Source: Azolla caroliniana (lineage: Eukaryota; Plantae; Polypodiophyta). From it: a stretch of 64,000 bases of DNA. Within the stretch, counting starts at the first letter, position 1. The number at the start of each line of letters is the position of its first letter. The stretch spans positions 14,694,001-14,758,000 of the forward strand of contig JBHGNT010000014.1 of the NCBI GenBank assembly GCA_043228905.1, read 5' to 3'. The notes under the pieces are model-generated. The model was not told where the DNA came from. It saw nothing but the letters and a program-made list of their open reading frames with translations, and searched no databases. The translations under genes and the position numbers were made by a program. Of the stretch, positions 21,678 to 53,555 are shown in pieces.

Positions 21678-21814
21678 GCTCTTAGTGTAAACTCTACTCG
21701 ACTGTCTAGTATTCTTGTTTCTAAAACTTTCTTTAAATATGTATCTTTTTCAATATTAGACATTAATTTGAATGAAGGACCATATTTACCTTTTTCGACT
21801 TTTGTGTCCATCTC

Positions 21815-24800: not shown

Positions 24801-26280
24801 TTCCACTTAGTATATGGGAAGGATGCAATGATGCCTGCAAATGTGTTGTTTCCTTCTATTCAAATAATGGAGTGTTTAGGAGTGCATGATGAATTTCAAA
24901 TGGATGTACGAAAAGAAGCTATGCATGATTTATTTTGGAAAAGAGATGAGGCAATACATTTCTATGAAGACTTGTGTCAACGATGGGATAAAAGAAGTCA
25001 AGCACTAGCAAGGAAAAAAAACATGATGGAGGGTATGTTGGTCTTAATATATAATAGTTCCTTGGATAAGACTTTTCAAAGAAAATTCAAGCATAGGTGG
25101 GATGGACCTTATTTAATCCACAAGAGGTTTACCAATGGTAATCCATATGTAATCCATATGTAATCCATATGAGCTAAAGCTTATGGATGGGTCATTAATG
25201 AGAGAAAGGATCAATGGGGTGAGATTAAAGCCATATCATTTACGCATAATGAGTTCCTCAATGACAATGACTTCTTAAAGTATAAAGAATAAAATGTTTA
25301 CTTGTACATATTTATGAAATGTTTTTAGGTATTTGTTGCTCAAGATAAGGATAAGGTATATATAGAGGATATTGGTAGTTTACTAGTGTTCAATTAGAAA
25401 AAGCTTTGACTTTATCAAAGCTTTACTTGGAGGGGGCTAAAGTGTTGTGTTGTAAATACTTGTGCTCAACAAAGTGGTTGAAAGATAGTAAAATATGGAC
25501 ACAAGCTAGTTATGACACTTTAGGCATGATGGTGGATGCTTTAGTCGAAGGTAGATGTGAAGAATCAAGATGAATTGATGTGACATAATCAAAGAGTGCC
25601 TTTACAATAGGCAGTCAATGTTTTTGTTGTAATATTTCAAGGGAATATTGGGTTTCAATAAATAAACATTCTTTGGAAAGCTTGCTCGATGTGCTACAAA
25701 TGTCTAGAAGGGGTCGTGGATAGAATCAAGCGTCTTCATACCCAAAATAGAAGATCTATCGGTTACATGCAAAGGAAAGTGGTTGAAGTGTTACATGTGC
25801 GATACGTGGCAAGAAACATGCAAGAACTTTACAATTAAGCCCCTATTGTATATAAGTATGACTGTGAAAGCCTTGAGAATAGAATAGCCATAGAATATCT
25901 CTTGATGTAGTGTGTGTTTTTATATCTGTCTTCTTAATAAATACTCTATTTTCATTCTCCTTTCCTCCTTTCATAGATTATGATACATATCTTTGTTAAT
26001 TCCAATCTCCTATTTGTTGTACATGAATGATTATCATAAATTATTGTAAACCCTCTTTGGTGTAGTGAGAATATATATATATAATATTATCAACTCTTGA
26101 TATAGATCCTCCCCTTTCATATTTCTTCATTGATTGTCTTTGTCATACCCATTCATCTCTTTTTGTGTTTGTGGTCTTTCTTAAACTCAAAGATGTTGTT
26201 ATGGTGCCCTATGATGATGTACCTTGTGTGTTTCTAGATGTATTGTGCTAGAGTTTTGAGAGGCAAATTCTTGCGCAACA
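21815..26280 (+). mobile_element. Tat-like Ty3/gypsy G3, 5'-truncated: RT, RNase H, second (archaeal-like) RNase H, integrase, PPT, 3' LTR (~25443-26280)
   Basis: WRVCVDFRPLN, DGFSGYFQI, MPFGLIN, FMDD (RT). YFDGA..NEAEY..KGDSLLIIRQ (second RH). CGGHFG..CRSCHEC, TDNGPEF, PQCNGLVE (INT). PPT ggagggggc at ~25429. Confidence 0.88.
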
Positions 26281-30927: not shown

Positions 30928-31744
30928 ACTTTATTTTGGTCTATTGATTAGTAATAGTCTCTTAACATACAAGCAAAAAGCGAAGAAGAAAGAATGTACC
31001 GAGTACATGTACTCTGAAATTGGATTATGAGGGTAGCTAAGTCTCATATTTATACCTCTTCCTAAGCCCCTTGAATAGATGTGCCTTTCTAAAAGACTAT
31101 CCATTCATTGGTTGTCCAAATCATGATAGTGCATGCACCTATCATTCCTTCTATCCAATCACATTAGTCCCTTTTTAACATTAGTGGACATACCCTTCAC
31201 TTATGTACATATTAGTGACCTACCATCACCTGAGTTATGTGTACATAACATTGTACCTCAAACGTCCTTAACCATCCTTAACCATCTCTAGTAAATGCAC
31301 CAATGAACCACAATGGAGTTAACTTGATTGCATTGTTCATCCTTCATTATTTCTAGAATTTTAGCAATCCAAAATAGATGGCCTAACTCATCATCCTTGA
31401 CGAATGTTGCAAAGAACATCACAACTTGTAACTCGTGCAAATTGCCTTGCCATCTTGCCTCTAAAATACGTGAAATTCTTAATCCCACGTTAATATCTCT
31501 ATGTCATGGATGAATTAGATTATTAAGTTCAGTATTATCTAGTGATTGATGGTGAGCAGTGGACACCATTGACGATACACCAATATTCCATGTGAACACA
31601 TTTTAGTGTGGCTAGTATCCGGCAATGTAGTGATCTAAAATCATATGCTGATGGCTGAAGAAGAATTACCCCACCATTTTGCATTTTGATCATCTACATA
31701 CTTCTTTGTGCATTCAATATTTTTTTGTTTCTCTTTAAGGCATC

Positions 31745-34700
31745 TGTTAAGGATTAGGTAATTAATTAAGGAATAATTATTACATAATTATGTGATTAAT
31801 TTAAGCGGAAGATTATGTGATATGTGTGTGAGAGGAAGAGAGAGTGAGAAAGAGAGAGAGAGACTTATGAATAACACAAGATGGGGGATGAGTAAACTAG
31901 AGTGTATATTATAAAACATCATCAACTATCATCAAATACAAAAATACCTTCAATGAGGTATATATAGGTTTCATGTGCAAGGGTGCACATGTGCTAGGAG
32001 AATATAGGTAAAACGTATAAGTCCTACATTAAATGAGCATGGAGTGGTGGATCTACAATGTATCCCACTTGAGTACAAAATCCTATTTAAGGCTTTATGG
32101 TCAACACCCTAACTAGATTCTTTCTAGGTAACTACTAAGTTACATGTGTTGACTAACTAACTAAACTAAGTTGAGCTTGATCTCTCAAAAAGCCCCCTCA
32201 AACTCAAGTGTGAGGCGTTTGACATCCGGCGTTGTTTTCAGCGTTGTCCGGCTTTCGATGTCGGCTTCTGTGTGGCTTCCGTCCGGCCTTCGGCTTTCTT
32301 CATCGTGGCAATCTCGGGTCCTCCCCCTCAAGCCAGTGACGAAGGCTTGTAGTGTGTGGGCGAAGGCCGACTACTTCCACCCATCATGGGTGACGAGCCG
32401 CTTTGTTCCGCCGCTACCTTCATCGCGAAGGCATAGTGATGGGCCATATACTTGTTGTAGTCGAACCGCGTGACGGGGTTCTTAGCTCTAGATGAGCGTC
32501 AAAGTTTTTCGCTCGCCGATGTGAGCGCCTTCTTTACTTCGGGTGTTTGCATGATGGGTACACCGAACTCACTGTCTAGTGAGGGAGCCGATCCATCCAA
32601 ATCATTATCGTCGGGGTGGTCGATTTCGTATTCGGGCATCTTGCCCTTGCCCTTGTCCGATTTCGGACTTGGCCGCGACGTGGTTGGGTCGCGTGAAGAT
32701 TCTTGTGGCTCACAAGGCTTTGCCATAATCAGACTTTCTTCGTTCATATGCGCAACTTGATCTTCGGTTCTTGTTCGGCGTAATCCGCATCGAGCGTAGT
32801 CGGAGTCGAAGAGGTGTTTGGTGCGTACCAGGATGTGTACTCGTCGAAGACTATGTCTCAACTTACGCGAACTTATCGCGTCGACGGGTTGTAGCACTTG
32901 TACGCCTTCTTCTCAGACGCGTATCCTATGAGGATACATTTCTCCGACTTCGCGTCGGGCTTCTGTCGTTGTTTGTTCGGGATGCATACATTCGCAATGC
33001 TTCCGAACACTTTGAGATGCAACAGGATCGGCTTCCTTCTGACGAGGAGCTCGTAGGGAGTTAGCTCATGGACTCCATTGGTGGTGCATCGATTCATGAG
33101 ATAGATGGCTGTGGATGCCGCTTTGGCCCAATAGAAGTTCGGCATGTGCTTCTCATGCATCATGGCGCGTGCTACCTCAAGTATTTGCCGATTCTTCCTT
33201 TCGGCGACTCCATTTTGTTGGGGTGTGTGTCGGCACGAGAATTCTCTACGAATGCCTTCACTTTGGAGGTAGGAGATGAACTCGTCGGAGAAGTACCCTT
33301 TCCTCTATCCGATCGTAGGCATCGAATGTGCCGACCGATTTCTTTTTCAACTTGCCCATTAAGCTTTTGGAAGTGGGAGAACACTTCGCTCTTCTTCTTC
33401 ATCGGGTAGATCCACATGTAGCGCGAGTAGTCATTGATGAAGGTTACATAGTATCAGCATCCGCCGATCGTCGGCGTTTGAGCCGGTTCCCATACATCCG
33501 AGTGAATGACGTCGAGGAGGCCTTTCCTCGCGTGGCTCTCCTTCGGGAATGGGAGTCGATGTTGTTTTCCGAGTTGACACGCTTCGCATACTCGGTCGAC
33601 TCGTTTCGACTCGAATGTTGGAAGTCCGATGACGATTCCCTTTGTTTGCATAGCTCGAAGCCGTTGGAGGTTGATGTGGCCAATTCCTTTGTGCCACAAC
33701 TCGATGTTCGTCTCGTTTTTGAGACCTTTAGCGTACATTGCCGATTTCACCTCGTTCGAATCGAGGATGAACATTTGGCCTTCTCTCCGCCCCTTAGCTA
33801 CGACTAGACCATCTTTCTCGATGAAGCATCCTTCTTTGGTGAAGCGGACTTGCATGCCTTGCTCCACGATTTGGCTGACCGAGACCAAATTCTTTGTTAT
33901 TGTGGGCACGTGCAAGACATTCTTGATGCAAGTTTGCTCGCCTTCTTTCCCGAATGGGACATTGCCGATAAGCCGAATGGGATGCGTGGTGTCGTCTCCC
34001 GTCTCTATAAAGCTGGGTCGATCCGGCGTTTGTAAATCGCGAAACCACTCTTCGTGGGATGTCATGTGATGTGAGGCGCCGGAATCTACGAACCACACGT
34101 CTTCCGGATTGGAGATGCTTGCGGAGTCGGAGACCGTCATAGAGTTCACTCTATGCCGCATTATGAATAGTTCGCCGTAATCCTCGTATTCGGAGTTGTT
34201 GGCGTAGTTTGTGAGTTGTCGGCTTGTCGACGCTGACTCGCTTCTTTTCTTCCGACACTCCACCTCATAGTGGCCGATTTTGCCGCAATAATTGCAAGTT
34301 GCGGGCCTCGTTTGCCGACCTTGTTTGGCTTGGAAGCTCCCCCTTCTTTCGAAGGTTCCTCGATGGCTTCCTCTTCTACCGCCACGACCTCATCCACGAC
34401 CACCGTCCGAATTCAAGAAGAACATTTGTCCTTCCGGTGCCTTGATTTTGTTTCGGACGTGGTTTTCTTCGACCAATAACATCGATTGGAGGTCGAAGAA
34501 CGAAGGAGGTTTTTCTCTCGCCAAGATTGCCGTCCGTAGTGGATCAAATCGTTGTGCGAGGCTGCCCAAGCATACTTGAACCATCTCGTCTTCGTCGACG
34601 TTTATGTTGATGGAGCCAAGGGAGTCACAAATGCTCTTGATTTTGGCAGTGTAGTCCGACACGGACGTGTCTTTTTGCCGAATGTTATTCAACTCTTCCC

Positions 34701-35650
34701 GGAGTTGAAGTTTGCGGGCGGTTGTGTTGGCAGCGAACATTTTCTTTAAGTTCTCCCACGCCTCTTTAGGCGTCTTGGCGTCTCGAATGTGGCTAAGCAT
34801 ATGGTCGTGGACACATGTCGCCAAGCAATACATTACCCGACTCGCTCCTTGCTCCCACATTGGGTAATTGGCGTTTGTGTTGTCGGGCTTGTTCTCGAGT
34901 ATGCCGTTGATGTAGCTCCAATACCCTTGGCTGACGAGGTATTGGGTCATCTTGTACTCCCAAGATGAAAAATTGCTCCGGTCTAGCTTTTCGCTAGGGA
35001 GCGAGCTACCCATTTGTGTGTTCATATTGTTTTGTGTCTTCCTTGTTGGCTCTTCTTTCTTCGATCACGTACTTGTGCTATGTAGCGACACTATGGTAGC
35101 GGATGGCCGGAATTTGTCATCGGCGTTTCGAACACACAATCACGAAGAGTCGGGTGGGCTTAGTGGATATGCTAAACCACACGCTCCGATACCATGTGAA
35201 GGATTAGGTAATTAATTAAGGAATAATTATTACCTAATTATGTGATTAAGTTAAGCGGAAGATTATGTGATATGTGTGTGTATGTGTGTGAGAGGAAGAG
35301 AGAGTGAGAGAGAGAGAGAGAGACTTATGAATAACACAAGATGGGGGATGAGTAAACTAGAGTGTATATTATAAAACATCATCAACTATCATCAAATACA
35401 AAAATACCTTCAATGAGGTATATATAGGTTTCATGTGCAAGGGTGCACATGTGCTAGGAGAATATAGGTACACCGTGTAAGTCCTATATTAAATGAGCAT
35501 GGAGTGGTGGATCTACAATGTATCCCACTCGAGTACAAAATCCTATTTAAGGATTTATGGTCAACACACTAACTAGATTCTATCTAGGTAACTACTAAGT
35601 TACATGTGTTGACTAACTAATTAAACTAAGTTGAGCTTGATCTCTCAACA
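31745..35650 (-). mobile_element. Ty1/copia C2 with two LTRs and a TSD but no RT/RNase H (gag-PR-INT only, ~3.9 kb)
   Basis: LTRs 31745-32190 and 35195-35650 are near-identical. TSD gcatc/acatc. PBS TGGTATCGGAGC at 35194-35183. PPT at ~32191-32200. gag ORF 34390-35025, PR/INT 34263-32870. No RT after MAHHYAF. Confidence 0.92.
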
Positions 35651-38600
35651 ACATCACATCCAATACATCCTTTGATCATTAATAGAGTTGCCAGGAGCCA
35701 TTTTTTTATGGTCATCATACGGCATTTGTTTTGCACCATGGATTTGAGCATTTGGAAAATGAAGTAAGTCTAACCTACAACCCTCTTGTGGCTCCCATTG
35801 TGTACTAGTCGAGTACCGTCATGTTGTGGCTAACAACACATCGTTTTATTAGGAAAACATGGTTGAAACTTATATTATTAAGAGGTGCAAGAACCCTATA
35901 TTTAGTCCCATCACCATCCATGCACAAGTGTTTGAAATCATACACTTCATTCAAATGATGTAATTCGGGCTTCGGTTTATAAGCTTCACTAATGAACTTT
36001 GGTGGCATGGGAAGCGTGAAAGCACACATCGTGCTAATTTCTTTAAGAATCTATTGAACATTTGATCTATATGATCATGGGTATGACCAACTAGGAAGAT
36101 GTTGACCTTAATCTTCTTAAATATGCCATTCTCTATGACCACACATAAATCACCAAAAACGGTCGACATCTTATTTTCTCTAGCTGTGTTGTTGAGTTGC
36201 AGATATTGCACGGGCATGAGTATACTGGCCAAGATTGTAACACTCTTTGCATGACTGTGGCTGTAAGGTTAGGGTCGTTGTGGATATTAGGATAAGTTAA
36301 GAATACTTGGGAACACAGTCACGTTCAAAAGTGGAAGGATCACACAATCCACTTTTAGATTCTGTTCACAATTGTGCAAATTTATGCAATATATAGAAAC
36401 TTGTTACACCAGTGTCGCATGTTCGTCAACCCATATAGAATTTGCTAAACTATTAATATTTAACAAGTTTCAAAGTAAAAAACATGTATTGTTTTGAACA
36501 TTGTTAAAGTTGATGATCGCCAAATACGAAACTTATTTAAAATTATATCATATGACAATTCTTTATTCAATTGACAATAGTTAAACTTTCAGAATGTATG
36601 ATGCAATTTTCAAAGTTGGTTGAGATGTTGAGAAAATCATGATCTTCAGACATAAAATGTAGTTAAATTACAAACTATGCACATGGTCTATACAACAATT
36701 GATCTCCAGGTTTAACCATCGTGCGGAGGTGTAGGGAGAAGAAATGGAAGTGATAGCTATAGTTAGTGATTATGTGTTATGCACTCTAATACTTAGTGAA
36801 TGTTGCACGATATACACACTGATGAGACAGTTTCCCCAATACACACCCATGAGAGAGAACACCCATACACACGTATCATATACTGGATACACTTGGACAC
36901 TCATTATGGTCACACACCCAAAAGTAAGGTGGGTCCGAATTGTAGAACATATTCGATGATCAAAAGTGAAGCTTGGATTAAAACAATTATAACAAGTACG
37001 TCGATTAAAACATGTAGCTTAGTAAAGCTTAGTAATGTTATAACGTCGATAGCAACAACACAAATTTAACAATATAAACATCAGTAGATATATTTAAAGA
37101 AACAATATAAACATGGAATCAAACTTACTTTACAGAGAATAAAACTTTGATTACAATGTTTTTTATAAAATACAAAATTCATTACATTGCTATAAGTTCA
37201 TCATTTTATTCGTCTTCCTTTTGAGAAATGTCCTCAGAATTTTGTGCATCGGCATCCACTCTAGTTAGGTTGGCTACCGTGGGGTCCTCCAAAACCTCAT
37301 CATCTAGTTCTATAAGCTCCCAAGGTTCACCAGCCAAGGGAGGAATAGGCCCACAAGAGGCCGCTTGAAACCGTTATGTATCCGTGACATGCTTTGCCCC
37401 TACCTCCTCGTCTTGATCTGGGCACTCCTATAAGGCTTTAATCCGTATACTAATGAAACATACTTGCTCCTCGTCTGTCTCCAATGCAACTGTATTCTGA
37501 AATAGTTTCAAGGCGCATGCAAATGTCGTACCTATCATGAAAATAATAAGATCATAGCTTCAATTAGACAACCAATAAGTATATACTTTTGTAGAGCAAA
37601 GTCTAAGAACATAGTCGTGCCAAAAAACAAATCTAAAATCCAATCTTCTTCGTTAGAGAACATTTCGATAAGGCGCATCATGAGTCGTTGGGGCTTTTGG
37701 TAAGGATTGATTAGGCCACGTTCAGTCATTGTGACATGTCGCAATTTCTGTGTAACTACTGGGTACACTAACAGATTTGAACCTTTGACCTCATTTGAAT
37801 GTTCCTTTATCCTTTGATTCTTTATTTCATCATAATAACCAACAATTATGTATTCAATAGCATTGACAAAACAAAAGTTCGGTCCTCTATTAACATTGGT
37901 TTTGATCCTATAAATGACAAAAAGAAAACAAAAGATAGAGACTCAAGTATTAGTTACATAAACTGACAAGAATTGTAATGCAACCAAAATTGAATTAGTC
38001 TTTGTATAACCCTTACCAAGCAAGCTTCTCTACACCATGAAAACGTGATCTCAATGCTTGAGCCACATAATATCCTTGGTCCATACTATGAAAGACCACT
38101 ATTCTCCACAAGCTTGTTGTGGTTAACTCCGCGAAATCCTTCACCAGTTTCTCCAATTGTTTGAACCTATATGGTTCATCATCGTAAGAAGATCCAACCA
38201 TATAGAATCCATATGGAATATCTGCAATGAGTAACGTGTACTCCTTCGGCAACTTCTGGATCATCTCCGCAACATCACCGCAATACAGATTATAATACAA
38301 TTCTTGGGTAATATCCTTTTTGTAGCTGAACTTCTTGAAAGTTTTGTCGTCTTCCACATCGAATGCCTTCACTAAGCGTAGGTCCTTTTCTTTCCGTGCT
38401 CTTTCAAGATGGGTAAGAAAGGAAGTTGGAAAATCATGTATATCTTTGACTTCTCCAGGCTTCTTGCTACGACATGGTTTCTATGTGAAACAACAAAACA
38501 CATAACTCATACTTAATATTCAAATATGTAATACATTAGAATGGCAAATATCAAATATGTAATATTAACCCAATGCTTAAAAGCAATAAAATATTCCGAT

Positions 38601-38944
38601 AGCGCCTTGTATGAAGACGTAATCGGATACTCTTCAGTCACTTGTGCCCATGTTAGGCAACCAAGTTGCTTCATAATCACCTCCTGAATTTTCATATACA
38701 CCTTGTGACTAGAAAAGCATAAACAACCATTAGCACTTATAAATTCAAAGACAAAACATGTAATAAGAACAAAAGTATTAGGCTTACTTATTGAACTCTG
38801 TGGTCAACCATTTCTTCTAAGCTTAGCTCTTTCGCCACGGCGGACACAAGTAGTTGCTCTTCTTTTATACCTTGCATGGCTCTCCATGGTGTTAGCTCTT
38901 TGAGAGATCTTTCTAAAGAATGTTCATTTACTGAATTCTGTTAT

Positions 38945-41900
38945 CGTGACGAGAAGTTATGAGCATTTTCATCCGCATCCATCTTTGCCCCACGGTTCCT
39001 CAAACGGAAGGTAGATTTTGAAGCCCTAAATCGAGTGAAAGGTACATTCTCTCTCCTTCCTTCTCTGTCTCTCTTTTCCTGTAGGTTTGTCCCTACAATG
39101 GCAAATACTCGTAAAACCGCCGCAAAGTTCGGGGGTATGATTGATAATGAGCCGAGATCACCAACAAATCTCAATTCTAATGCAATGGACAAAATGCTTA
39201 TGAGTCACTTGATTTCTCTTCAAAAAACCATAAACAAGCAAGGTGAAGAGATTAGGACGTTAATGAAAGAGAATACTAAGCTCCAAAGTGTTGTCATTGA
39301 GAATGAAAGTCTTAAACAAGTGGTTGCAAAACTTCAAGAAGAGATTCAAGAATGTAAAAGAGCTTCTTTTGAAACAAATGAGTGCCTTAACAAGATTGAG
39401 TTAAAGGAAGCATTAAAAGAAGAAAAATCGGACACGATGATGCGGGATGTAAGTGAGATGAAAAATGTATGTATAACGAAGTCATGGGCTGATGTATGTG
39501 GTGGGGATGTGCTATCAAACTCATCTAATATGCATGTGATGCATCAAGCGAAGAATATAGAAAGCATAGATGTCCGAGAATTGAAAGAACGGGAACAAAG
39601 ATCAAAGAACATTGTCGTCCATGGGATTAAAGAAGAGAGTATGGAAATTTTTGAGCATGCATTATGGGATGTCAGATGTGAATGTATATGGGGCACACCA
39701 AATTGGGAAACATGGTGATACTTGCTCCGGAGAAAGGCCTATTGTATGCACAATGACAGATGATACAAAGCGGCGGATCATACTCGAAAATAGTTGGGTA
39801 TACCTCAAAGGTACACAACGCTTTGTGAGTGAAGATCGTACTATCTCACAACAAAATGCTCATCGTAAAGCATATGAAGAAAGATTGAAAAACAAGGTTA
39901 AGGATGTGCCTAAAGATGGAAATGTAGGCAAATAGGGACACGCGATCTATGAGACTAACCCATGCCTTTTACGACTATGCTTTTAGAATTGCAATGGATA
40001 CCCATGGAATGCGGGATTTGGCATAGAGGAGTTCACCAATGACTCGGATATCATACTTCTTGTTGAAACATGGGAGCATGATACTCAAAGGATTCAAGGT
40101 TTAGGAAACTATAATGTACACTTTGATATGGAAGAAAAATCTAAGACAAAGAAGAGGACAAGGAGGGGTGGCATGTTTGATTAAGAAGGAAATAGAGAAA
40201 TATGTGTCAATCATAAAAAATGATGAAAATAAATGCTACATATGGCTCAAAATAGAAACACCTAATGATTTGCCCGCTTTTGTAGTTGGATGTTACATTC
40301 CTCATCAAGATTCTAACTTTTATGCTTGTTTGGATAAAGATCAACCGTTTGCCAATCTAGAAGATGATATTGCTTATTTCAAATCCAAAGGGGAAGTTAT
40401 TGTCTTTGGTGACATGAATGCTCGTACAATAAGTTTCCAACTTGATTTACAAGAATCTTTCATGCCACATATCTCAAGGATGCAAGAGGATATGCAAATG
40501 TATAACCGCTGTTCTAGCGATGAAAAAGATCCGGACCAATTTGGGAAGTTACTCCTACAAATGTGCAATAGTACTGGATTGCTTATTGCAAATGGTATTT
40601 CCTTATGGCCCAACACTAATGGTTTTACATGTAGAAAACACAACGGAAATAGTGTGATTGACTATGTGCTACTTTCCGAAGGTATTTTGGATCGTATACA
40701 TAAATTCTCACTTGGTGAATGGACACCGGAATCCGATCATAGGCCTTTATGCATTGATCTCAAATGTATGCATAGGTTTGATTGTGAGAAGGCTATTGAA
40801 GATAATAAACAATCGCACTTGAGCATGAACCTTGAATGGACACCGGAATCCGATCATAGGCCTTTATGCATTGATCTCAAATGTATGCATAGGTTTGATT
40901 GTGAGAAGGCTATTGAAGATAATAAACAACCGCACTTGAGCATGAACCTTAAGCGAGCACCCATGTATTCCAAGATGGTTGAGGATATGTTACAAATGAC
41001 AAAGATACAACATGGTGCCACACTAGAATGCAAATGGGAAGCTTTCAAGAAAGTCATTCTCTCATGTACAAACAAATGTTTTTCGACCAACCGCACATCT
41101 TGAAAGTGCACCAAGAAACTTAGGAAAAAATGGTTTGATAAAGAATGTCGTGAAGCTTGAAAGTGCCTTATGGTTTTGGATGTAGTTAAGGATAAAGAGA
41201 ATTACCAAAAGCATTTGCATGAGTATAAAAGGCTTATTCAAAGAAAGAGAAGAATATGGGAAGTTACTCAACAATTTATCCAAATGCAAGAGAAAGCACA
41301 TGCATGTGCTAAATTTTGGGGAAATCTAAAGGGAAAATGTGTTGAGAGTTATGGTGACTTAACTCTTCACGACTTGTCTATGGATTGTAAGAATTTATAT
41401 GAGTTATCTCTTGCCGGAAAGATGATGTGTTATGGTTCTCTTTCACATATGCCTCCCTTGTTTACAATTGAAGATATATGCATAGGACTTAAGAAATTGG
41501 CCTCTCGAAAGGCAAGCGATCTTCAATGCATAAAGGCTGAAATGCTCAAATGGACGAGAAAGGAAGCACATATATGGATAAGCGATATGTTTAATGATGC
41601 ATTGCAACATGGTATGCTGTACGATTGGACTACAAATTGGATCAAACCTTTACATAAAGGTGGAGATATAAATAATGTAAACAACTACCGAACCATCATG
41701 GTTGGCTCATTAAATAAGTGTATGGGCTGAAAAAAGTGGTAAGAGAGCTTATGGACAAGCTGGCTTTCGGAAACACCATAGCACCATTGATCACCTTATC
41801 ACCCTTCGAGTATTAATGGAGGAAAGTCGCCTTAGAGGTAAAGGTTTATATTGTTGCTTTGTAGACTTCAAGAAAGCTTTTGATATGGTACCTCGTGAGC

Positions 41901-43430
41901 ATCTTTGGAGGCGAATGGAAGAACTTGAGGTCCCAAGTGAATATATGCTTGCAATTTCCTGAATTTATGAGAAGGTTATATGTTGTGTGTGCACGAGAGA
42001 TAAACTTTCAGATTTTTTCAAAAGCACTATTGGTGTTAAGCAAGGATGCCCACTCTCACCAACACTATTTGGTCTATGCATTGATGAATTGGAAGAAATG
42101 GTTACCAAGTTTGCAAAGGAAGAATGTGTTGAAGAAGTTGCCATTGGGAATGTTGTGATTATGCTTTTGCTATATGCAGATGATGTAGTGCTTTTTGGAA
42201 ATACTTTAGGAGATGCACAAAAGCTTATGAAGGCATTGGAATTTTTTTGCATGCATACTAAATTAAGTGTCAATAGCTCTAAAACAAAGATTATGCTTGT
42301 AAAGAGACAAAAAAGAGATAAACCATGCATTATGTACAACAATAAGCAACTCAGATGTTTGGAAAGCTTCACATATCTTGGCCTTGAAGTTCCTTCAAAT
42401 CATAGATGGAATGAATGTGCTAGACGCCGTTTAGAGGCGGGTAAACGAACATACTATGCATTTGAGAACACATGCAATCTTGGAGATATTAAGTGTTGGG
42501 TCCTCAAGAAATATCTCTTCGACACTTTGGTGACACCGGTTCTTCTCTATGGGGTGGAAGTATGGGGCGGTAGCATCCCTAAATCTATGTGGAAAGAGTT
42601 TGAAAATGTCGAGAAACATTTTCCTACAAAGTTTCTACAAGTTAAGAAACAAACACCCTACACACTCCTCCTTGAGATGGGATCGCTTCCCATTGAGATC
42701 ATGGCCATGGAAAGGGTTGTTGAATACATGCTTAAGGTTCAAAAAAGTCCCTCACATCGACTTCCTAGAATTGCATGGGAAGCAAGCAAAAAGATCCAAA
42801 AGACGTATAAAAGCAAAATTTTGTGTTCCGGTTGGATGGAATGCGAGACACTTGCTTCATGATGCATCACTAAATTCCTTTGTAAATGAGGCCTTTTTGC
42901 AACGCCAATGTATCATTACATGGGACAAATGTGGAGGCTCATGCTTCCATTATTCTACACATGTTGCACCTAACTACAAAACCATATTCTTTGCGGAATG
43001 GGGAAACCATACACATCGATACATGTTAGAGCCCATACCGTTATCTACCATTCGAACCATTGCTTCCATGCGACTTAGCTCACATGCATTGCGATGTGAG
43101 ACAGAGGGTTGGGGCACAAGTGATGAGAGTGGTCGACTATGCACACTTTTCCCTAAACAAGTTCACGTGTATGAGTATTACACTTTGATACAATGCTCTG
43201 CGTTTGATCATATCTGACCATGCTTTCCACATCTCTTCGATTGGACCCAATCCTTGCATGAATTCCTCTCACAAGCACAATGTGCACTGTCGATTGCAAC
43301 ATTCATTGGTAAAGTTCTTGAACATCGAGAGTCACTACTCACTTTCACACGTATCACATGAAATGTAATATTTTTGGTCTCATAGGTCATATTTGACCTC
43401 CGAAGACGATAATATAATCTATCTATCTAT
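38945..43430 (+). mobile_element. LINE retrotransposon (RTEX/L2-like), near full length, pseudogenised: ORF1 ~39098-39935, ORF2 ~39950-43360
   Basis: ORF1: coiled coil, RSKNIVVHGIKEE, RPIV, SEDRT. ORF2 APE: ETW, GDMNART, IDYVL, SDHRPL. ORF2 RT: QAGFR, FVDFKKAFD, GVKQGCPLSP, YADD, YLG. C-terminal Cys/His motif. Ends in an (ATCT)n/(CT)n tail. Confidence 0.9.
40717..40950 (+). repeat. 117-bp in-frame tandem duplication in LINE ORF2
   Basis: EWTPESDHRPLCIDLK..SMNL occurs twice, with units starting at 40717 and 40834. Confidence 0.95.
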
Positions 43431-46400
43431 CTCTCTCTGTCTCCTTCTCTCAAGAATTCTACACCCTCATTTCCTCTTAGTATTAATCCTCATCTGTAGT
43501 ACTAATTCCTTCTCTATCTTAGTACTATTCCTAACAGTTTGAACCGAATTCCTTCCTTCTTATCTTTGTATCCCTCATTCCCTTCATAGAAATATTCTTA
43601 TCCGTCCTTCCTCCAATACTATGGCAATTGCTAGCGCTCAAGAATACCAATATGAGATTAGTAGGCACGTTGCTCAGTGGCCCAGCTTTGGCATGGTTCA
43701 CACCTTTATTAGAGCAACAATCCCTATTGTTAAATAAATTTGAGGAATTTATTAACGAGTTTAAAGCCTGTTTCGGGGACACCGATAATGTTAGGACGAC
43801 AATCAATAAAATCTGAAGGTTGTGTCAAGGTGACCATCCAGGCTTATCCTTTGAAATGATGTCAAAGATTTACTCCTGATTTTTGCCGAAGAACCAAAGT
43901 CGCTCATAGAGGCAATCAGTCGAGCGGTGCGTTGCGATAACAGACTTTTCGAACGATGTTCGAAATGTCAATTACAAATGCCAAGAACAAGATCGAAGCC
44001 CACATATGCCTTAGTCGTAGCAAAGCCATTTGCAAGGGATTCATATAATGCGTCTCCAGCAAATATACCAACCCCGATGGAAATCAACAGAGACCATTAT
44101 CGGAAAAGGAAAAGCAGTGACGCCGAGCAAATCGACTATGTCTTTATTGCGGTGGACCGGGGCATATTGCAGTAAACTGTCCCCATAGGCCAAGAAGACA
44201 TGAAAATCAAATAGCCGCTAGTACTAATAGTATTAAGCCCGAATCTATTTCATTAGTTCTAATAGCCCAAGCCTATCAAACAAATTTGAAGTCCTTAGTC
44301 AACTAGAAGAAGAGTTAAACAACTAAGTCCAGCCAAAATAGGAGCCGTTTGGTTGGACATCCCTAGATCTGTGCAACCCATTAGTGGTTCCATTCCCTCT
44401 AAGCAAGTTAGCAATGTCTTCCTAGCTCAAGTAACAATTAGTACTAAAACTACTCCTCTAGTACATGTCGTAGCACTCCTAGATTCCGAAGCTAATTCTT
44501 GCTTCATGGATAAGAATTTTGCCCAAGTTCATAATATATCCTTAAGAAAACTCCCTTGCCCAGCCTCTGTAGTCATTGATGGTCGCCCCATTGCTTCCAG
44601 AAACATCCTAGAAGAGTTAGAGCCAATTAGTGTTGTCCTAGATAATTTGGCATGTGTAGTATCATTCAATATAATTAGTAGTCCAGAACATCCCATTGTT
44701 TTGGGGTTACCATGGTTCGTGTTACAAAATCCGGATTAATGTTGTAAAGTTCTTCACAAACATCGACATACGAGGCACATATAACCTCGTACGGATCCGA
44801 CCGGGAGATGAATGGAAGACCTCTTTTCGCACCTAATACGCGCACTTCGAGTATACGGTTTTGCATTCGGTCTAACCACATGGCAAATGATATATTCTGT
44901 GATATCTGTTTGATCATCTAATTGGATGATCTACTAGTTTATTCGAAGAATCAAGAAGACCTTGATTCTCATGTACTATTAGTACTAAATGACTTGGAAA
45001 ACATGGTCTTTATGCAAAACTGGAAAAATTGTAAAAGAATATGTTGTGCATAAGCGTATGCGTAAACATAGAGTACACAACTCGGAGGAATAAGACAATT
45101 CGGTAAAACATAGAAAACGCAAAGATGGAGATGGAGATGGAGAGAGAGAGCAGACAACAGAAAAAACTTAGATTCAAAATAATGACTCTCTGTCTGTGTA
45201 CATACATCGTGCTCAGTGAACACATTTTATACAAGCCCTTACAATTGGGCTGACACAAGTACTGACAGTACTTGAATGCTCATAAATGAGCTGACTACAA
45301 AAACTCCCAAAATTATTCCTTTACAAGGAATAACACTCTAACGGCCTCTTCGGTTTTCACACCGATGCAGCCTTGTTGTGGGTACTTTTTCACGCACCCA
45401 GTCTACGCACTGGGTTACGCTGCGTACTTCGCACCAAATGTTGAGCTTGTCTCTCAATACTCCCCCTAAAGCTCAACTTGAGGTTCCAGTTGCTCCGCCG
45501 GATCTACGCTCCGGTTCCTTCTGGCTTCACGCCTCGCTCGCGCTCCTCGACCTGTTCGATTCCGCGAGCTTCGACCCTTTCGGTCGGCTTGTTTGCTCGT
45601 TCGGCCCTTCTCAGCTCCCTTGCTGTCGCGGTGTCGACACATCCTTCACTGCCCTTTTCTCCGCATGGCCTTCAATTGATTCGGCATATCCGAATCGAAC
45701 ATACCAATTGAATCAAACTCTTCAGATTCAATATCACTCTCATCCGAATTGGTTGTCTCCAATTCGTCCTCAATCTTCAAGCCCCTGATAACATCCGACC
45801 ACGTCTTAGTCTTGGTGTTATCTCCCCCTGTTTCGGCTGTCCTCGGCTCCTTATGCTTATGGCCCGTGCTTCTGTCTTCGGCTTCTTTAGCCGGTTCGAA
45901 GTCAAATTCTCCATCTGACTCCGCATCTCGGTCACTTCCGCTGTGATGCTTACCTTCACTCCTTTCACGCTCTTGTCCCTGTTCTTCCTTTCTCCCCCTC
46001 AAGTTCGGCATGTCGAGGTGACGCAACCCAAGCGCACCCGAGAAATGCCATAACTTGTCGAGACCAAGAGGTTTTGTGAAGATGTCGGCAATCTGCCAAC
46101 CAGTCGAAACATGCACCAATTCAACTTCTCCTGGAAGGACCCGTGCACAGACAAAATGGTAATGCACCTCGATGTGCTTGGTCCGGGCGTGGAACACAGG
46201 GTTTTTCACAAGGTGGATACTGCTACGGTTGTCGCAATAGATCGTCGTCGGATCAGACACCTCTACCTGTAGATCCCATAATAGCCATTTCAGCCAAATG
46301 AGTTCGCACGTAGCGACAGTGGCCCCTCGATATTCGGCCTCCGTGCTCGACAGTGTTATTGTCGGCTGCTTTTTGCTGCTCCACATGATCGCCACACTTC

Positions 46401-49400
46401 CTAATGAGAAGGCGTATCTGGATGTGGATTGATGATCGCTGGCGTTTCCGGCCAAATAGGCATTCGTGTAGCCGACTAACTGTTCAGTTACGCCTGCTCG
46501 ATATAGCAACGCCATGTCTTTCGTGCCGTTTACATATCGCAATATTCTTTGCGGGCACTGAAGGTGTTTGGTCGTAGGCTGCAACTTGAATTAACTGATT
46601 AGGCTAACTAGATAACTAAGATCTGGTTGAGTAATCGTCAAATAGATAAGGCTGCCAAGAACCTATCGGAACCGTGTCAGGTCGCACGCCTTTCCCGAAT
46701 CTTGTCGACGCTTTACATTTCTGTCCAAAGGGGTCGAGATGGGCTTACAATTTTCCATCTCGAACTTGAAGAGCATATTCAGCGCGTAATGACGCTGAAT
46801 AAACGATACCGCAAGCTGAGACTTCACGTGACGGATTTCTTCAAGGTCGGCCCTGGTGATGACTAAATCATCAACGTACAAGAGTAGGTTGACCGGTCCA
46901 TATTGACCTTGCTAAACAAATAGAGAAGAGTCTAATTTCGACGGCGCAAAACCCATCCTACGCAACTGCTGCATAATCTTTGCGTTCCAAGCTCACGGGG
47001 CTTGCTTTAGTCCATATAAGAACTTCTTCAATCGGAAAACTACTGAGGTGTTTTGTTCGGATAGAAATCCGAGGGGCTGTATCATGTACACCTGCTCCTC
47101 AAGATAACCTTGCAGGAACGCGTTCTTTACATCCATCTGATGTAAGTGCCACCCCTTTGTCGCTGCTACGGCTAGTAGGACTCACACGGTAGTCATCTTC
47201 GGGACAGGCGCGAAGGTTTCATCATAGTCCACATCGTGCTGCTATCCGTAGCCTTTCGCTACTAAACAAGCCTTGTAGCGGTTGACAGAGCCATCGGTGT
47301 TGTATTTCACCTTATACACCCATCTACATCCAATCGGCTTTACACACTTCGGTGCGTCAACTAGGTCCCATGTCTCGTTCTGCGTGAAGGCGCGCATCTC
47401 TTCCTCCATCACGGCACGCCAATTTGCGTCTTCCGCTGTTTCTACATAGCTCTCCGGCTCACGCACTTCCGCCACTCGCGTCATGTACGCGTAATGGTGC
47501 GCCATGTACTCATTATACCCGTACCTCTTTACAGGGTTCTTTGGGCGGGTAGATCGGCGTAATTCGTGATTACCCGATTTTGTGACCTTTTTGACCGATT
47601 TTGACCTCTTTCATGGAGGTTCCTTTTCGACTAGCTCGAGGTCAGATTCACTCCGAACTGACTCGGCACTACCAAAATCGTATTCCGGCGTATTCTTCTT
47701 CCCCTTCTCCTTGTATGTAAACCGTCTCCTTGGTTCTTTACACGGGGACATTACGGCCGAGTCTCCACTACTCACCGCCTCATCATCTGGTTGGTCATCT
47801 CGACCCAACCCCTCATTCGGCCCACTCAGTCGAAATGAGATCGGACTCTCTCTTAGAGCTTCGATGTCCTCATCATGTGGAGGCATCTCAGCCTCGTTGA
47901 CTTTGTCTTCAGAAATCAGAATGGAGTCATGAGGTTCTGGAGGAGAAGGCAAGTACCACGAAGCGAACTTGTCAAATACGACATCACGGCTTCAATGTAC
48001 TTCCTTCGTTTGGGGGTTATAGCACTTATACCCCTTCTGCTCGTCTGAATAGCCGACCAAGATACATTTCTCGGCCTTGGCATCCAGCTTCCTCCTTTTC
48101 TCCCTCGGCACGTGCACAAACGCAATGTTGCCGAAAATCCTCAAGTGTGCCAAGTTCGGCTTCTTTCCGAAATATAGCTCATGTGGCGACACTCCTCCAT
48201 TAGCAGAAGTCCGATTCTGCAAGTAGACAACCGTCTTCACGGCTTCAGCCCAATAGAATTTCGGCATATGCTTCTCTTCAAGCATTCCCCTGGCCGCTTC
48301 TTTAATCGTTCGATTCTTCCGCTCGGCCACGCCGTTCTATTGCGGCATGTATCTACACGAGAATTCGCGTCGAATTCCCTCCTTTTGTAGATAACATGTG
48401 AACTGGTCGAAGAAGTAATCCTTTCCGCCATCAGACCGTAGGCATTTGATGTTACGCCCGGTTTCCCTTTCCGCAAGGCTCTTCACCTCCAAGAAACATG
48501 CGAAAACTTCGCTCTTCTTTGCGATCGTGCATGCCCACGTGTGCCGAGTGAAGTCATCGATGAAGGTTACAAAGTAACGGCTTCCACCGAGACTTGCGTT
48601 CTGTGTAGGACCCCGCACATCCGAATTGATCAAATCCAGTAGACTTCGACTACGATTACGCTCATTGGGGAATGGAAGTCGGTGTTGTTTTCCCATCTAA
48701 TAGGCTTTGCAGACTTGGGCATTACGGCCCCAAAATTTCGGCAATCCGGATACGATGTTCTTCGTCTGCATTTCACGTAGCTATGGGAAATTTATGTGGC
48801 CAAACTGCTTGTGCCACAGGTCGATATCCGATTTGACCTTTTGTCCTTTCGCCTACAACACGGTGCCGGCTGGATTAGTGTCGAGGATAAACATCCTCCC
48901 TTCACGGCGCCCTTGTGCGATCACTTTGCCTTCCTCTCTTATGAAGCAATCGAGATGCGTGAATCGAACTTGCATACCTTGGTCAACGATCTGTCCGACC
49001 GACACAAGGTTCTTGGTTATTGTCGGGACGTGCAATACGTTCATGAGTTTCCCTTTCTGCCTAACTTGGCTGAGGGGAACTTCTCCGACATGTTCGATGG
49101 TATGCGTAGTGTCGTCTCCCGTTTCGACCACTCCTTGCGATTCCGGTTTCTCCAAGTACGAGAACCATTCCTCGTGACTCCTCATATAATTTGACGCTCC
49201 GGAATCAACATACCACACTTCGCTCGATTTCGAGGTGTTCACGGCCATAGAATTGGCCTTATGCTTCATTACGAAGGTTGGGCCCGATTTATTTTCGGCT
49301 CGTTCAGAGCCTTTTGCGTAGTGCGACTTCTGATGCCTTCCTGCGTCTCTTCCGCTCGATCCAACTTTGTCTGAATCAGTTTGTTTCTTCCAGCACTCGC

Positions 49401-52400
49401 TCTCCTTGTGGCCTTTTTTGCCACAGTACCAGCAATCCGGTCCGGTATTCTCTTGCCGTCTTCCGGCGCCGCCATGACTCCCCTTGCTTGCGGAGGGTTC
49501 GGAATTGCTTCCGGCATCTCGATCATGCCATAAATTCTGCTCTTTTCGGCCGCCTCCATTGCGCGTTGATCCGTCTCGTCCACCACGACCACGGGGCCTA
49601 TCATCCTCCGTGTAAAGCATCTTGCCATCGGCGTGCGCACCCGCGTGGTTTTCTTCTACGAGCAACATTGACTGAAGCGTAATATCCCTCATGCAGATTG
49701 CCATTCGGAAAGGTCTGAACTTTGACACCAAGCCACCAAGACAAACTTGCACCATTTCATCTTCCTCGACGTTCACGTTGATGGAGGCGAGAGAGTTGCA
49801 GATTTCTTTGATCTTGGTGGTGTAATCAGCCACCGACATATCTCTTTGTCGTACATTGCTGAGCTCCTGTCACAGCTGCAGCTTTCTGGCCATTGTGTTG
49901 GCGGCGAAAATCCTTTTGAGATTTACCCACGCGTCCTTTGGCGTCTTGGGATCCTGGATATAGCTCAAAAGTTGATCGCTCACACAGGACACGAAGTAGT
50001 ACAACACTCTGCTTGCCACTTATTCTCAAGCCGGAAAGTCCCTCTGTGTCGAGTCGAGTGCTACATTGTTTGCTCCTTCGACATAACTCCAGTAGCCATG
50101 GCCGAGCAGGTACTGGTGCATCTTGTAAGACCAAGATGCGTAGTTGCTTCTATCAAGCTTTTCAGTCAGAAGTGAGCTTCCCATTCCTCTGTCCGTAGTA
50201 TTGTCTTTTTCTTCTCCGAAAGCGAACAACTTCAACTCTGTTTCGTCACAAACTTTTCTTGTGGGCTGCAGAGGACTTCAACCCTCGCGCTCTGATACCA
50301 TGTAAAAGAATACGTTGTGCAGAAGCGTATGCGTAAACACAGAGTACACAGTTCAGAGGAATAAGACAATTCGGTAAAACACAGAAAATGCAAAGATGGA
50401 GATGGACATGGAGAGAGAGAGCAGACAACAGAAAAAACTCAAATTCAAAATAATGACTCTCTGTTCTGTGTACATACCCCGTGCTCAGTGAGCACCTTTT
50501 ATACAAGCCCTGACAATCGGGCCGAATTTCAGTTTTTCTTGTTGTCTGCTCTCTCTGTTCTGTGTACATACACCGTGCTCAGTGAGCACCTTTTATACAA
50601 GCCATGACAATCGGGCTGACACAAGTACTGACAGTACTTGAATGCTCATAAATGAGCCGACTACACAAACTCCCAAAATTATTCCATTACGAGGAATAAC
50701 ACTCTAATGGCCTCTTCGGTTTTCACACCGATGCGGCCCTGTTGTGCGTACTTTTTCACGCACCCACCCAGTCTACGCACTGGGTTACTGAATTTGAGTT
50801 TTTTTTGTTGTCTGATCTCTCTGCTTTGTGTACATACATCGTGCTCAGTGAGCACCTTTTATACAAGCCCTGACAATCGGGCTGACACAAGTACTGATAG
50901 TACTTGAATGCTCATAAATGAGCCGACTACACAAACTCCCAAAATTATTCCTTTACGAGGAATAACGCTCTAACGGCCTCTTCGGTTTTCACACCGATGC
51001 GGCCCTATTGTGCGCACTTTTTCACGCACCCACCCAGTCTACGCACTGGGTTACCCAGTACATGTAGTTTGTTGTGTGCAACCAAGTGGAATTTCTAGGC
51101 TCTGTCATCTCCTCGGAAGGCATCTCTATGGGTCCAGCTAAGGTCAAAATTGTGGTAGAGTGACAGACTCCCGTTCGTTGCAAGATGTGCAATGTTTTTT
51201 AGGCTTCGCAAATATTTTTTATACAAAAATGCTCAAAGGTTATTTTGCCTCTCACACAACTTACCAAGAAGGGGAAGTTGTTTTGTTTGGTTTCAGGAAG
51301 TGGACATGGCTTTTGTAAGTCTTAAGAAAGCATTTACATCAGGTCCTATTCTAGCTCATGTTGATCCGAATAAACCATTCATCATGGAGGCAGACACATC
51401 GGATTTCGCCCTTGGTAGCATTCTATCACAACAAGGCGATGATGAAAAACTACATCTGGTGGCTTTCCACTCGCGAAAGTTTGACGCCGCCAAAATCAAC
51501 TACGAGATACATGAAAAGGAGCTATTGGCAATAGTGGACTCTTTTGCACAATAGAGGCATTTTTTTAGAGGGATATTCTCATCAAGTCACAATATTCAGT
51601 GATCACAAAAACCTTGTTATTTCCAGAATGCTCGTGTATTGCTCACTTGTTTTGACTTCAAAATTACATATAGTCCTAGGAAGCAACAAGGAAAGGCAGA
51701 TACATTATTGCGACACTCGTGTCTAGCACCTTGTCCCAGTGATCCAACATTCGATAATCAAAAGCAAGTCATCCTAGGACCAACATGACTGCAAGCAACG
51801 TGGGTTTTTGACACTCCATTGGATTCCCGCATTATCGAGACTATACGTGAAGACTTGAAGACAGATGCTTTTGCTCAAGCCATTCTAGCGCAAATTGATC
51901 CCTTGCGGGCAACCTGCTCACAGTTGAAACAACCAGGTATGGACTATGGACAATTCGAATGGCATGATGGATTACAATTCTTTAAGAAACTCTTGTATGT
52001 TCCCAATGGTGCTTGTCGCCTTCGGGTAGTCCAAAGTTGTCATGGCACATATACAAATGGACATTTTGGTAGTACTAAAATGTTGGATTTAGTATAACGA
52101 TCATTTTGGTGGCCTCATATGCGACGATTTGTTGAAGACTATGTTCGGACATGTGTTACATGTTACAGAGCAAAGATGCCAAGACATCATCCATATGGTT
52201 TATTGGAACCATTACCAATTCCAAGCAAGCCGTGCCAGTCCATTTCTCTAAATTTTATCACATATTTTATCGGAAAAGTTAATGATGTCCCTTTTCATCT
52301 TGATCTACCTCCGCAACTATGGTTACATCCGGTTTTTCATAGTTCTCTTCTTGAACCCTATCAAGAAAACACTATTCCGAATTGTATTACACCATCTCCA

Positions 52401-52968
52401 CCCTCGAACGAGCTTGAAGCAGGACCAGAGTATGAAGTTGATGCCATCCTCGATTCCAGGATTGTTCGCAATAAACTATACTATTTGGTCGATTGGCTAG
52501 GCTATAGTCCAAGCCAGCATACTTGGGAACCAGTCAAGAATATCGCAAATGCTCGAGCTCTTATTGAGGACTTCCATCGAAAATATCCCGACAAACCAGG
52601 TCCTCCATCTAAGACGCCTCGTAACACTCGTCGTCTTGAGGGGGGGGTAGTGTCATGATATAGCTTGGTATGGCTTCAAAAAGATTTGAACCCATGACCT
52701 TCTGTCACATGGGTTGAAGCCCTACCATTAAGCTATATATTATAATACAAAGAATATTTTTTATTTACATTTATTATTTCACTTAGGAAATCCATGTATA
52801 TTCTAGATTTATCTGGAACATTTTAGAAATGTCAAGAGTACTCCTAAGCATACTAAAAAAAGAGGCACATGGTATTATTAAGAAATATTCGGTTCAACGC
52901 CTGTCTTAAGCCTTCTAGCTATTCTTGTATATTCTCTTCATATAATATAGCATATCATTTGTTATCAG

Positions 52969-53029
<61 letters not shown>

Positions 53030-53120
53030 TCTCTCGAGAATTCTACGCCCTCTTTTCCTCTTAGTACTAATCCTCATCTCGAGTACTAATACCCTCTCTG
53101 TCTTAGTACTATTCCTAACA
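43431..53120 (+). mobile_element. Chromovirus G4 (Tcn1-like): partial 5' LTR to 43536, gag, PR, RT/RH, partly deleted INT, chromodomain, 3' LTR 52651-53120; interrupted by copia C5
   Basis: LLSGPALAWF (gag), ALLDSEANSCF (PR), [22 protein letters not shown] (RH), EYEVDAILDSR..YLVDWLGY..TWEP (chromodomain). PPT at 52638-52650. Both LTRs end attcctaaca. Confidence 0.9.
45030..51054 (-). mobile_element. Ty1/copia C5, full domain set, pseudogenised; 3' LTR 45030-45459, rearranged 5' LTR from 50301
   Basis: PBS TGGTATCAGAGC at 50300-50289. gag, PR, INT, RT and RH ORF fragments. PPT at 45460-45467. Inserted in the G4 RT after LYAKLEK. Same family as C3. Confidence 0.92.
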
Positions 53121-53555
53121 AGTTGTGGGTTAAGTTTCCCTTTATTTGACGTTGACCTTTCACCTTGTTTTTCCACATTGTAAATATCTGGTCTTGGAAT
53201 TCCCAAACAACCCCATTTATGAAGGCAAGCTGGAACCACGACTCGTACATTCGAATACCATCAGACTTTACTGCATCATCCACAATGATCTCAACTTCAT
53301 GAAGACATTGACAACGAAGTGTTGGAAACATCTTTGGTCCAATTCTCTGCTTGACATCTAAGTATTCATGGTGAAAAAATCTGATGCGCTCTATCGATGA
53401 CATCTTTTGACGGTAGTCGTTGTCGTCGTTATGGTCCCATGCTAACAACTTCGCTTCATCCATTGTTAGGGACACGTAAATCTTACATTCAGCATACTTA
53501 AAGAAGTATGTTGTGGGATGTTCCAACTGCCTTCTTGCTTCTGCCGAGGGCAATT

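Follow-up and report, generated by a model that had tools for sequence, protein, structure and literature searches.

How does a DNA methyltransferase gene of bacterial type, interrupted by introns, come to lie among nested retroelements in a fern, and to what did it once belong? The question is raised by a 64,000-nucleotide stretch of the Azolla caroliniana genome (GenBank assembly GCA_043228905.1, contig JBHGNT010000014.1, positions 14,694,001 to 14,758,000 of the forward strand; hereafter 'the window', to which all unprefixed coordinates refer), in which an original prediction made from the letters alone had placed at 37206-38910 a horizontally acquired, intron-gaining and by now inactive beta-class DNA amino-methyltransferase. 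The locus is very probably a decayed accessory gene of a family of DNA transposons of the cut-and-paste kind possessing a DUF7869 transposase, most likely of the Sola1 type. In its intact form the gene joins an N-terminal ParB/sulfiredoxin (Srx)-like domain to a beta-class N6/N4 DNA amino-methyltransferase, the motif IV of which has the form D-[IVA]-P-Y-G.

The methyltransferase domain

The minus strand from 37206 to 38940 comprises five exons (E1 to E5) and four short introns of a gene for a beta-class N6/N4 DNA methyltransferase. Three-frame translation together with a scan for stop-free segments recovered on this strand every motif named in the original prediction: NLYCGD...LLIADIPYG (NLYCGDVAEMIQKLPKEYTLLIADIPYG) lies within a stop-free segment at 38016-38480, W|IKTNVN...EYIIVG (W|IKTNVNRGPNFCFVNAIEYIIVG) and NPYQKP...DWILDLFFG (NPYQKPQRLMMRLIEMFSNEEDWILDLFFG) both lie within 37615-37907, and GTTFACALKLFQNTVALETD is the motif of the last exon. 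Their order is permuted, the DIPYG of motif IV in E3 preceding the FxGxG motif I (DLFFG|(S)TT), which is divided between E4 and E5.

Profile and homology searches were carried out exon by exon, and not on the joined protein. E4 alone matches the Pfam family PF01555 (N6_N4_Mtase) with E 1.3e-8 and 35.5 bits, the cut-off being 26.7, and in NCBIfam it weakly resembles CcrM and a YhdJ-type adenine methylase; E3, which carries motif IV, has no methylase match in Pfam or NCBIfam. Searching with E3 among 1.84 billion representative proteins yielded 114 relatives (best E 3e-44), and intact relatives match PF01555 with E values down to 7.6e-18. The methylase signal in the window is real and lies far beyond chance, and the assignment to the bacterial-type beta class, as first proposed, is borne out.

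When the family profile is compared with the PDB, the best matches are beta-class adenine methyltransferases, led by M1.HpyAVI/DpnA (5hek, 1.5e-12) and followed by MboIIA, RsrI and CcrM, and bdelloid N4CMT (8s9m) is matched only with E 6.7e-5; because of this ranking, adenine would be a better guess for the target base than cytosine. The earlier caution that base specificity is unreadable from motif IV alone is upheld. The bacterial N6-adenine enzymes (5hek, M.MboIIA 1g60, M.RsrI 1eg2, CcrM 6pbd) share with the family the placement of motif IV ahead of motif I, an Asp-type motif IV and the QKP...DxVLDxFxGSGTT block. They have DPPY, however, where the family has D-I/V/A-P-Y, and the family is further distinguished by a methyltransferase N-terminal half too diverged for Pfam, by introns, by an acidic tail of eukaryotic type and by the ParB fusion. 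Since 44 of the 58 relatives' fragments that cover motif IV keep it as D[IVAL]P[YHF], long-term constraint appears to have acted on the active lineage.

A ParB/Srx-like domain 14 kb upstream

The interval originally taken as the gene holds its 3' two-thirds and stands to that extent; the gene continues, however, at 53131-53547 of the minus strand, 14 kb upstream of the methylase exons, with the remnant of a ParB/Srx-like domain that had been missed. Minus-strand positions 53140-53547 correspond to residues 145-286 of the Ginkgo protein Gb_37443 (P0043) at 45% identity (tblastn, E 4e-27), and close relatives of the ParB exon on metagenome contigs, forming 127 clusters, reach 60-88% identity. 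Because the ParB part and E1 form one continuous open reading frame (ORF) in relatives (P0241, P0242, P0256), we conclude that the window contains a single exon split between ~53131 and 38940.

Upstream, the match to relatives at 73-79% identity ends sharply at 53547, and the first ~110-130 residues of the ParB part of intact relatives are absent from the whole window. The relatives' candidate nucleotide-binding motif, V-I-G-G-S-H-S-A-E-A-R-R, is disrupted, GGSHS having been replaced by GGVSNKLPS (VIGGSHSAEARR in the relatives, GGVSNKLPSAEARR in the window), and everything upstream of it is lost.

The N-terminal domain is not matched by Pfam ParBc, and Pfam offers for it nothing beyond a weak DUF6551 match (0.0039). 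For the intact relative P0244, AlphaFold2 modelling with 26 aligned sequences gave a mean predicted local distance difference test score (pLDDT) of 83.8. Foldseek comparison of this model with the PDB placed Noc, ParB with CDP or CTPγS, sulfiredoxin, PadC and KorB at the top, with E values from 2.7e-4, a probability of 1.00 and modest template-modelling (TM) scores of 0.3-0.6, weak unannotated chains standing lower in the list. Assignment of the N-terminal domain to the ParB/Srx fold is supported by this predicted structure.

Exon-intron structure and decay of the window copy

Intron sites were assigned by enumerating those GT/GC..AG pairs that preserve the frames defined by homology. The presence of four short spliceosomal introns, as originally described, is confirmed: three exhibit canonical GT..AG sites in the frames that homology demands, and the fourth has the CT donor already recognised (Table 1). 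At the first junction, across which the Ginkgo relative P0119 reads EFTNHKVYMKIQ, relatives continue as ...EEMV-I-EFNK up to and across the donor, whereas the window reads ...EEMV-DH-R; the EFN and the AA starting the split codon are shifted there by one base and readable only in the +1 frame. Since intron 1 fits only with the end of E1 in that frame, E1 must have suffered a frameshift near 38800. When the window is aligned with the relative contig L004, the donor of intron 4 is seen to have changed from G|GTAATA to A|CTATGT, and by the same change the Gly codon GGT of motif I has become AGT (Gly to Ser). The last exon contains, besides the previously reported in-frame stop TAG at 37428-37430, a further one, TAA at 37374-37376. 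With its 5' truncation, 14.2-kb insertion inside an exon, frameshift, GT-to-CT donor, motif-I Gly-to-Ser replacement and two in-frame stops, the window copy is dead, as had been suggested on the strength of the CT donor and the TAG.

The insertion is made up of nested retroelements, namely a long interspersed nuclear element (LINE), an element with long terminal repeats (LTRs) and, within the latter, a copia element. The 3' LTR of the outer element ends at 53125, six bases from the exon break, and because its LTR pair is 88% identical, the gene must have been dead for a long time. Within the endonuclease ORF of the interrupting LINE, a 117-bp unit is present as a tandem duplicate (40716-40949, 99% identical). 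Likewise, a 266-bp unit is tandemly duplicated in one LTR of the nested copia (50524-51054) and present in single copy in the other (45158-45422).

Table 1. Coordinates of the split gene, the interrupting retroelements and the transposase remnants in the window
Feature	Position	Strand	Basis or remarks
ParB/Srx-like N-terminal domain remnant	53131..53547	-	tblastn of full-length relatives; 5'-truncated
Nested retroelements within an exon that is undivided in relatives	38941..53130		14.2 kb
LINE, endonuclease and reverse transcriptase domains	~39035-43217	+	Pfam
LTR element	LTRs 43418-43541 and 53002-53125		LTRs 88% identical; chromo-integrase 52119-52655
Copia nested in LTR element	LTRs ~45030-45422 and 50301-51054		
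E1, continuation of ParB exon (LTPWRAMQGIKEEQLLVSAVAKELSLEEMV)	38788..38940	-	frameshift near 38800
Intron 1	38709..38787	-	donor GTAAGC, acceptor ...ttctAG; phase 2 in shifted frame
E2 (HKVYMKIQEVIMKQLGCLTWAQVTEEYP...YFIAFKHW)	38570..38708	-	
Intron 2	38481..38569	-	GTTAAT...CATAG; phase 0; canonical
E3, N-terminal half of methyltransferase domain with catalytic motif IV LLIADIPYG	38017..38480	-	homology to relatives
Intron 3	37908..38016	-	GTAAGG...TATAG; phase 2; canonical; splits Trp codon of W-x-K-x-N
E4, IKTNVN...EYIIVG...NPYQKPQRLMMRLIEMFSNEEDWILDLFFGT	37615..37907	-	PF01555; ends within S-adenosylmethionine (SAM)-binding motif I
Intron 4	37532..37614	-	donor destroyed, A|CTATGT; acceptor AG intact
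E5, GTTFACALKLFQNTVALETD... and acidic C-terminal tail	37206..37531	-	terminal TAA 37206-37208
DUF7869 (DDD-type) transposase remnant, middle and C-terminal part	35657..36348	-	tblastn, Riccia and Adiantum transposase exons
Copia separating the transposase pieces	LTRs 31745-32120 and 35195-35580		LTRs 97% identical
C-terminal tail of same transposase	31300..31452	-	tblastn

Relatives and the transposon units that carry them

Named relatives come only from streptophytes other than flowering plants, with five paralogs in Ginkgo biloba, at least seven members in Adiantum nelumboides, at least four in Riccia sorocarpa, and single matches in Chara braunii and Diphasiastrum complanatum; further members are unnamed intronless proteins on short metagenome contigs. 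A search with the whole Ginkgo protein returned Ginkgo paralogs only, owing to a word-index limit. Judged by sequence matches, the transposon family appears to range over ferns, Ginkgo and a liverwort and, by the single matches, to a lycophyte and a charophyte. The annotated Chara braunii protein (P0064, 1825 aa) contains two ParB-like and two methylase-like matching segments; either the duplication is real, or the gene model has run a tandem pair together. In Logan contigs from four DNA runs, 275-627 pieces per run match 37206-38910 at 90-99% identity, originating from several related organisms, and these numbers identify the family as a high-copy repeat in the lineage of the window.

Upstream of the ParB-methylase gene and in head-to-head orientation with it lies a gene for a DUF7869 transposase, at two loci each of Adiantum (L002, L006) and Riccia (L003, L007). 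The transposase exhibits the motifs DGMDQ, LDNT..ENK and GHTHDxxDQ, and in Riccia matches PF25273 (DUF7869) at 1.9e-50; most of the DUF7869 clusters of the ESM Atlas come from animals, as is expected of a transposase widespread in eukaryotes. Between the two Adiantum loci, identity of 90-95% is confined to a single block, L002:4595-13711. The units so defined (L002:4595-13711 and L006:68252-81692) have terminal inverted repeats (TIRs) AACACTCGGTCATCAAAA, and 4-bp target site duplications (TSDs), found in these Adiantum relatives only, surround them, CCAA in the case of L002 and GCTT in the case of L006. The block is a complete 9.1-kb two-gene cut-and-paste transposon. The L006 copy contains stops and a 4.6-kb insertion in its ParB exon, and the ratio of nonsynonymous to synonymous substitution (dN/dS) between the two copies, which lies around 1 (~0.4-1.9), reflects neutral decay after insertion and is silent on selection in the active lineage.

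The intron inside SAM motif I is common to the ferns and the window. In Riccia, a single uninterrupted tblastn match (L003:10954-11652) spans the methyltransferase domain, which is thus without introns there; since the fern domain has them, intron gain or loss must have occurred in the course of the family's history.

Transposase remnants in the window

Of a DUF7869 transposase, the window itself retains a middle and C-terminal portion, detected at 58% identity over 53 aa (tblastn), and within it the segment 35954-36268 matches PF25273 with E 2.8e-20. The second catalytic Asp of this remnant is replaced by Asn, the C-terminal tail has been separated from it by a copia element (Table 1), and the 5' half of the transposase was not found anywhere in the window. 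The remnant is probably a second, truncated copy or the product of a rearrangement, and not a working variant. The Adiantum TIR has one match in the window, with 3 mismatches, which is at chance level.

Other features of the window

An intact ORF of 342 aa at 7220-8245 of the minus strand encodes an AP2/ERF protein, the only long-coverage matches of which are from ferns (Ceratopteris, 33% over 86%; Adiantum, 36% over 83%). By these matches the window is assigned to a fern-like lineage remote from Polypodiales. At 60250-63993 of the minus strand, an apparently intact copia polyprotein is encoded by an uninterrupted ORF of 1247 aa with gag, a protease-like barrel, integrase and reverse transcriptase. 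The retroelement pol at 20454-25163 of the plus strand contains RVT_1, RNase H and an extra C-terminal RVT_3/RNase H-like domain, and is unrelated to the methylase gene.

Discussion

Our finding that the methyltransferase forms the C-terminal part of a ParB fusion protein relates the locus to accessory genes described in algal transposons. The 21.5-kb element Sola1-1_Ec32 of Ectocarpus contains a gene for a 1104-aa protein with ParB and N4/N6 methyltransferase domains, located opposite the transposase, and it was proposed that such ParB-methylase accessory proteins bind and modify their own element (PMC12477816). The likeness, drawn from the published description, extends to the same two domains in the same order and to the placement of the gene opposite the transposase within a large DNA transposon; the differences are that the host is a brown alga, that the protein is longer (1104 aa versus ~650-750 aa here) and that the window copy is dead. 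A passage in PMC12477816, citing Iyer, Abhiman and Aravind 2011, also mentions ParB-fused DNA methylases in green-algal transposons. In the red alga Bostrychia, Plavaka elements carry the accessory genes PAG2 and PAG3, encoding a ParB-oxygenase and an adenine-methylase-SET protein, beside inverted-repeat arrays, and the arrays adjoining the ParB gene were proposed to be docking sites (bioRxiv 10.1101/2025.02.11.637652). The green-algal and Plavaka elements likewise represent eukaryotic transposons with ParB and DNA-modifying domains of prokaryotic type. In Plavaka, however, ParB is fused to a 2-oxoglutarate oxygenase and the adenine methylase to SET, so that two proteins are involved, and the examined parts of the window contain no array. 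The algal ParB-methylases appear closer to the gene studied here than are bdelloid N4CMT and Marchantia DN4MT, which the original prediction had named as precedents.

Several observations weigh against the assignment to a Sola1-type transposon or against its corollaries. The Sola1 label is putative, drawn from DUF7869, the DDD-like motifs, the 4-bp TSDs and the definition of the superfamily; in the window, the methylase gene is followed downstream, on its own strand, by the transposase remnant, whereas the genes of intact relatives are head-to-head; neither TIRs nor TSDs were found for the window copy; at 35-37.3 kb and 53-54.1 kb there is no palindrome or tandem array that could be a candidate ParB docking site; and the close relative L005 is without a transposase within 4.6 kb upstream of its gene. 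Furthermore, motif IV contains Ile, Val or Ala at the position of the first Pro of canonical enzymes. Some of these points would be accommodated if the gene were the accessory gene of another transposon superfamily or of a composite element, and the gene order in the window a genuine variant architecture, the more so as accessory genes for ParB or methyltransferase proteins occur in Plavaka and Mutator elements of red algae as well. We nevertheless regard this as improbable: the DDD-like motif set and the 4-bp TSDs fit Sola, and a transposase remnant that lacks its whole 5' half and is split by a copia element fits truncation better than a working variant. TSDs of 4 bp, reportedly part of the definition of Sola1 given by Bao et al. 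2009, agree with those found in Adiantum.

The proposal that a bacterial beta-class DNA methyltransferase was acquired horizontally as a host gene, gained introns and later became a pseudogene captures correctly that the domain is of bacterial type and that introns are present, and the contrast between the intronless Riccia domain and that of the ferns is compatible with their gain, or loss, within the family. A stand-alone host gene is, however, very unlikely in view of hundreds of diverged copies per genome, the repeated linkage to a transposase inside units bounded by TIRs and TSDs, and the neutral decay of paired copies; the gene is rather an accessory gene of a transposon. Because bacterial profiles no longer recognise the half that holds motif IV, any bacterial transfer must be ancient and into the lineage of the mobile element. 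Least credible of all is that we are dealing with a homologue of the eukaryotic N4-cytosine methyltransferases, which would write N4-methylcytosine (4mC). MpDN4MT1a/b of Marchantia and bdelloid N4CMT are indeed eukaryotic genes of bacterial ancestry that belong to the same Pfam family and share the beta-class motif order, and the family profile does detect N4CMT. Yet the best PDB matches are adenine-specific and lead by 7 orders of magnitude, and motif IV is of the SPPY type in these enzymes (TSPPY in DN4MT1) and D-[IVA]-P-Y here; DN4MT1 and N4CMT are moreover host genes with demonstrated 4mC, and neither a ParB fusion nor a transposase partner is found with them.

If the locus is thus read as a decayed transposon accessory gene, one may envisage that in intact members the ParB-like domain would dock the protein on sites in the DNA of the element itself, that the methyltransferase would then modify this DNA, at N6 of adenine more likely than at N4 of cytosine, and that the modification would mark or shield the element. 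That intact members are indeed active in this manner, combining ParB-like self-recognition with a linked amino-methyltransferase that writes N6-methyladenine (6mA), or 4mC, on its own element, is possible but must be regarded as tentative. The window copy is incapable of docking or methylation, having lost its 5' end, the integrity of its exon, its reading frame, a splice donor and the SAM-motif Gly, and having gained two stops. It is a fossil, and its value lies in being a dated record of a long-dead gene.

None of the papers searched reports a ParB-methylase transposon from land plants. The design as such is already published for algae, and we add here a streptophyte member. It has been retained in streptophytes from Chara to Ginkgo, with its catalytic motif conserved and introns acquired, and a gene carried by transposons may therefore be the source of 6mA or 4mC where these have been reported in seed-free plants and gymnosperms. 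If intact members are active, they would constitute a hitherto unrecognised, element-encoded source of DNA methylation other than 5-methylcytosine in land plants, and such methylation might protect the element against silencing by the host or exert control over its transposition. In Ginkgo and the seed-free plants, the family as a whole is a plausible candidate for an element-encoded source of 6mA or 4mC.

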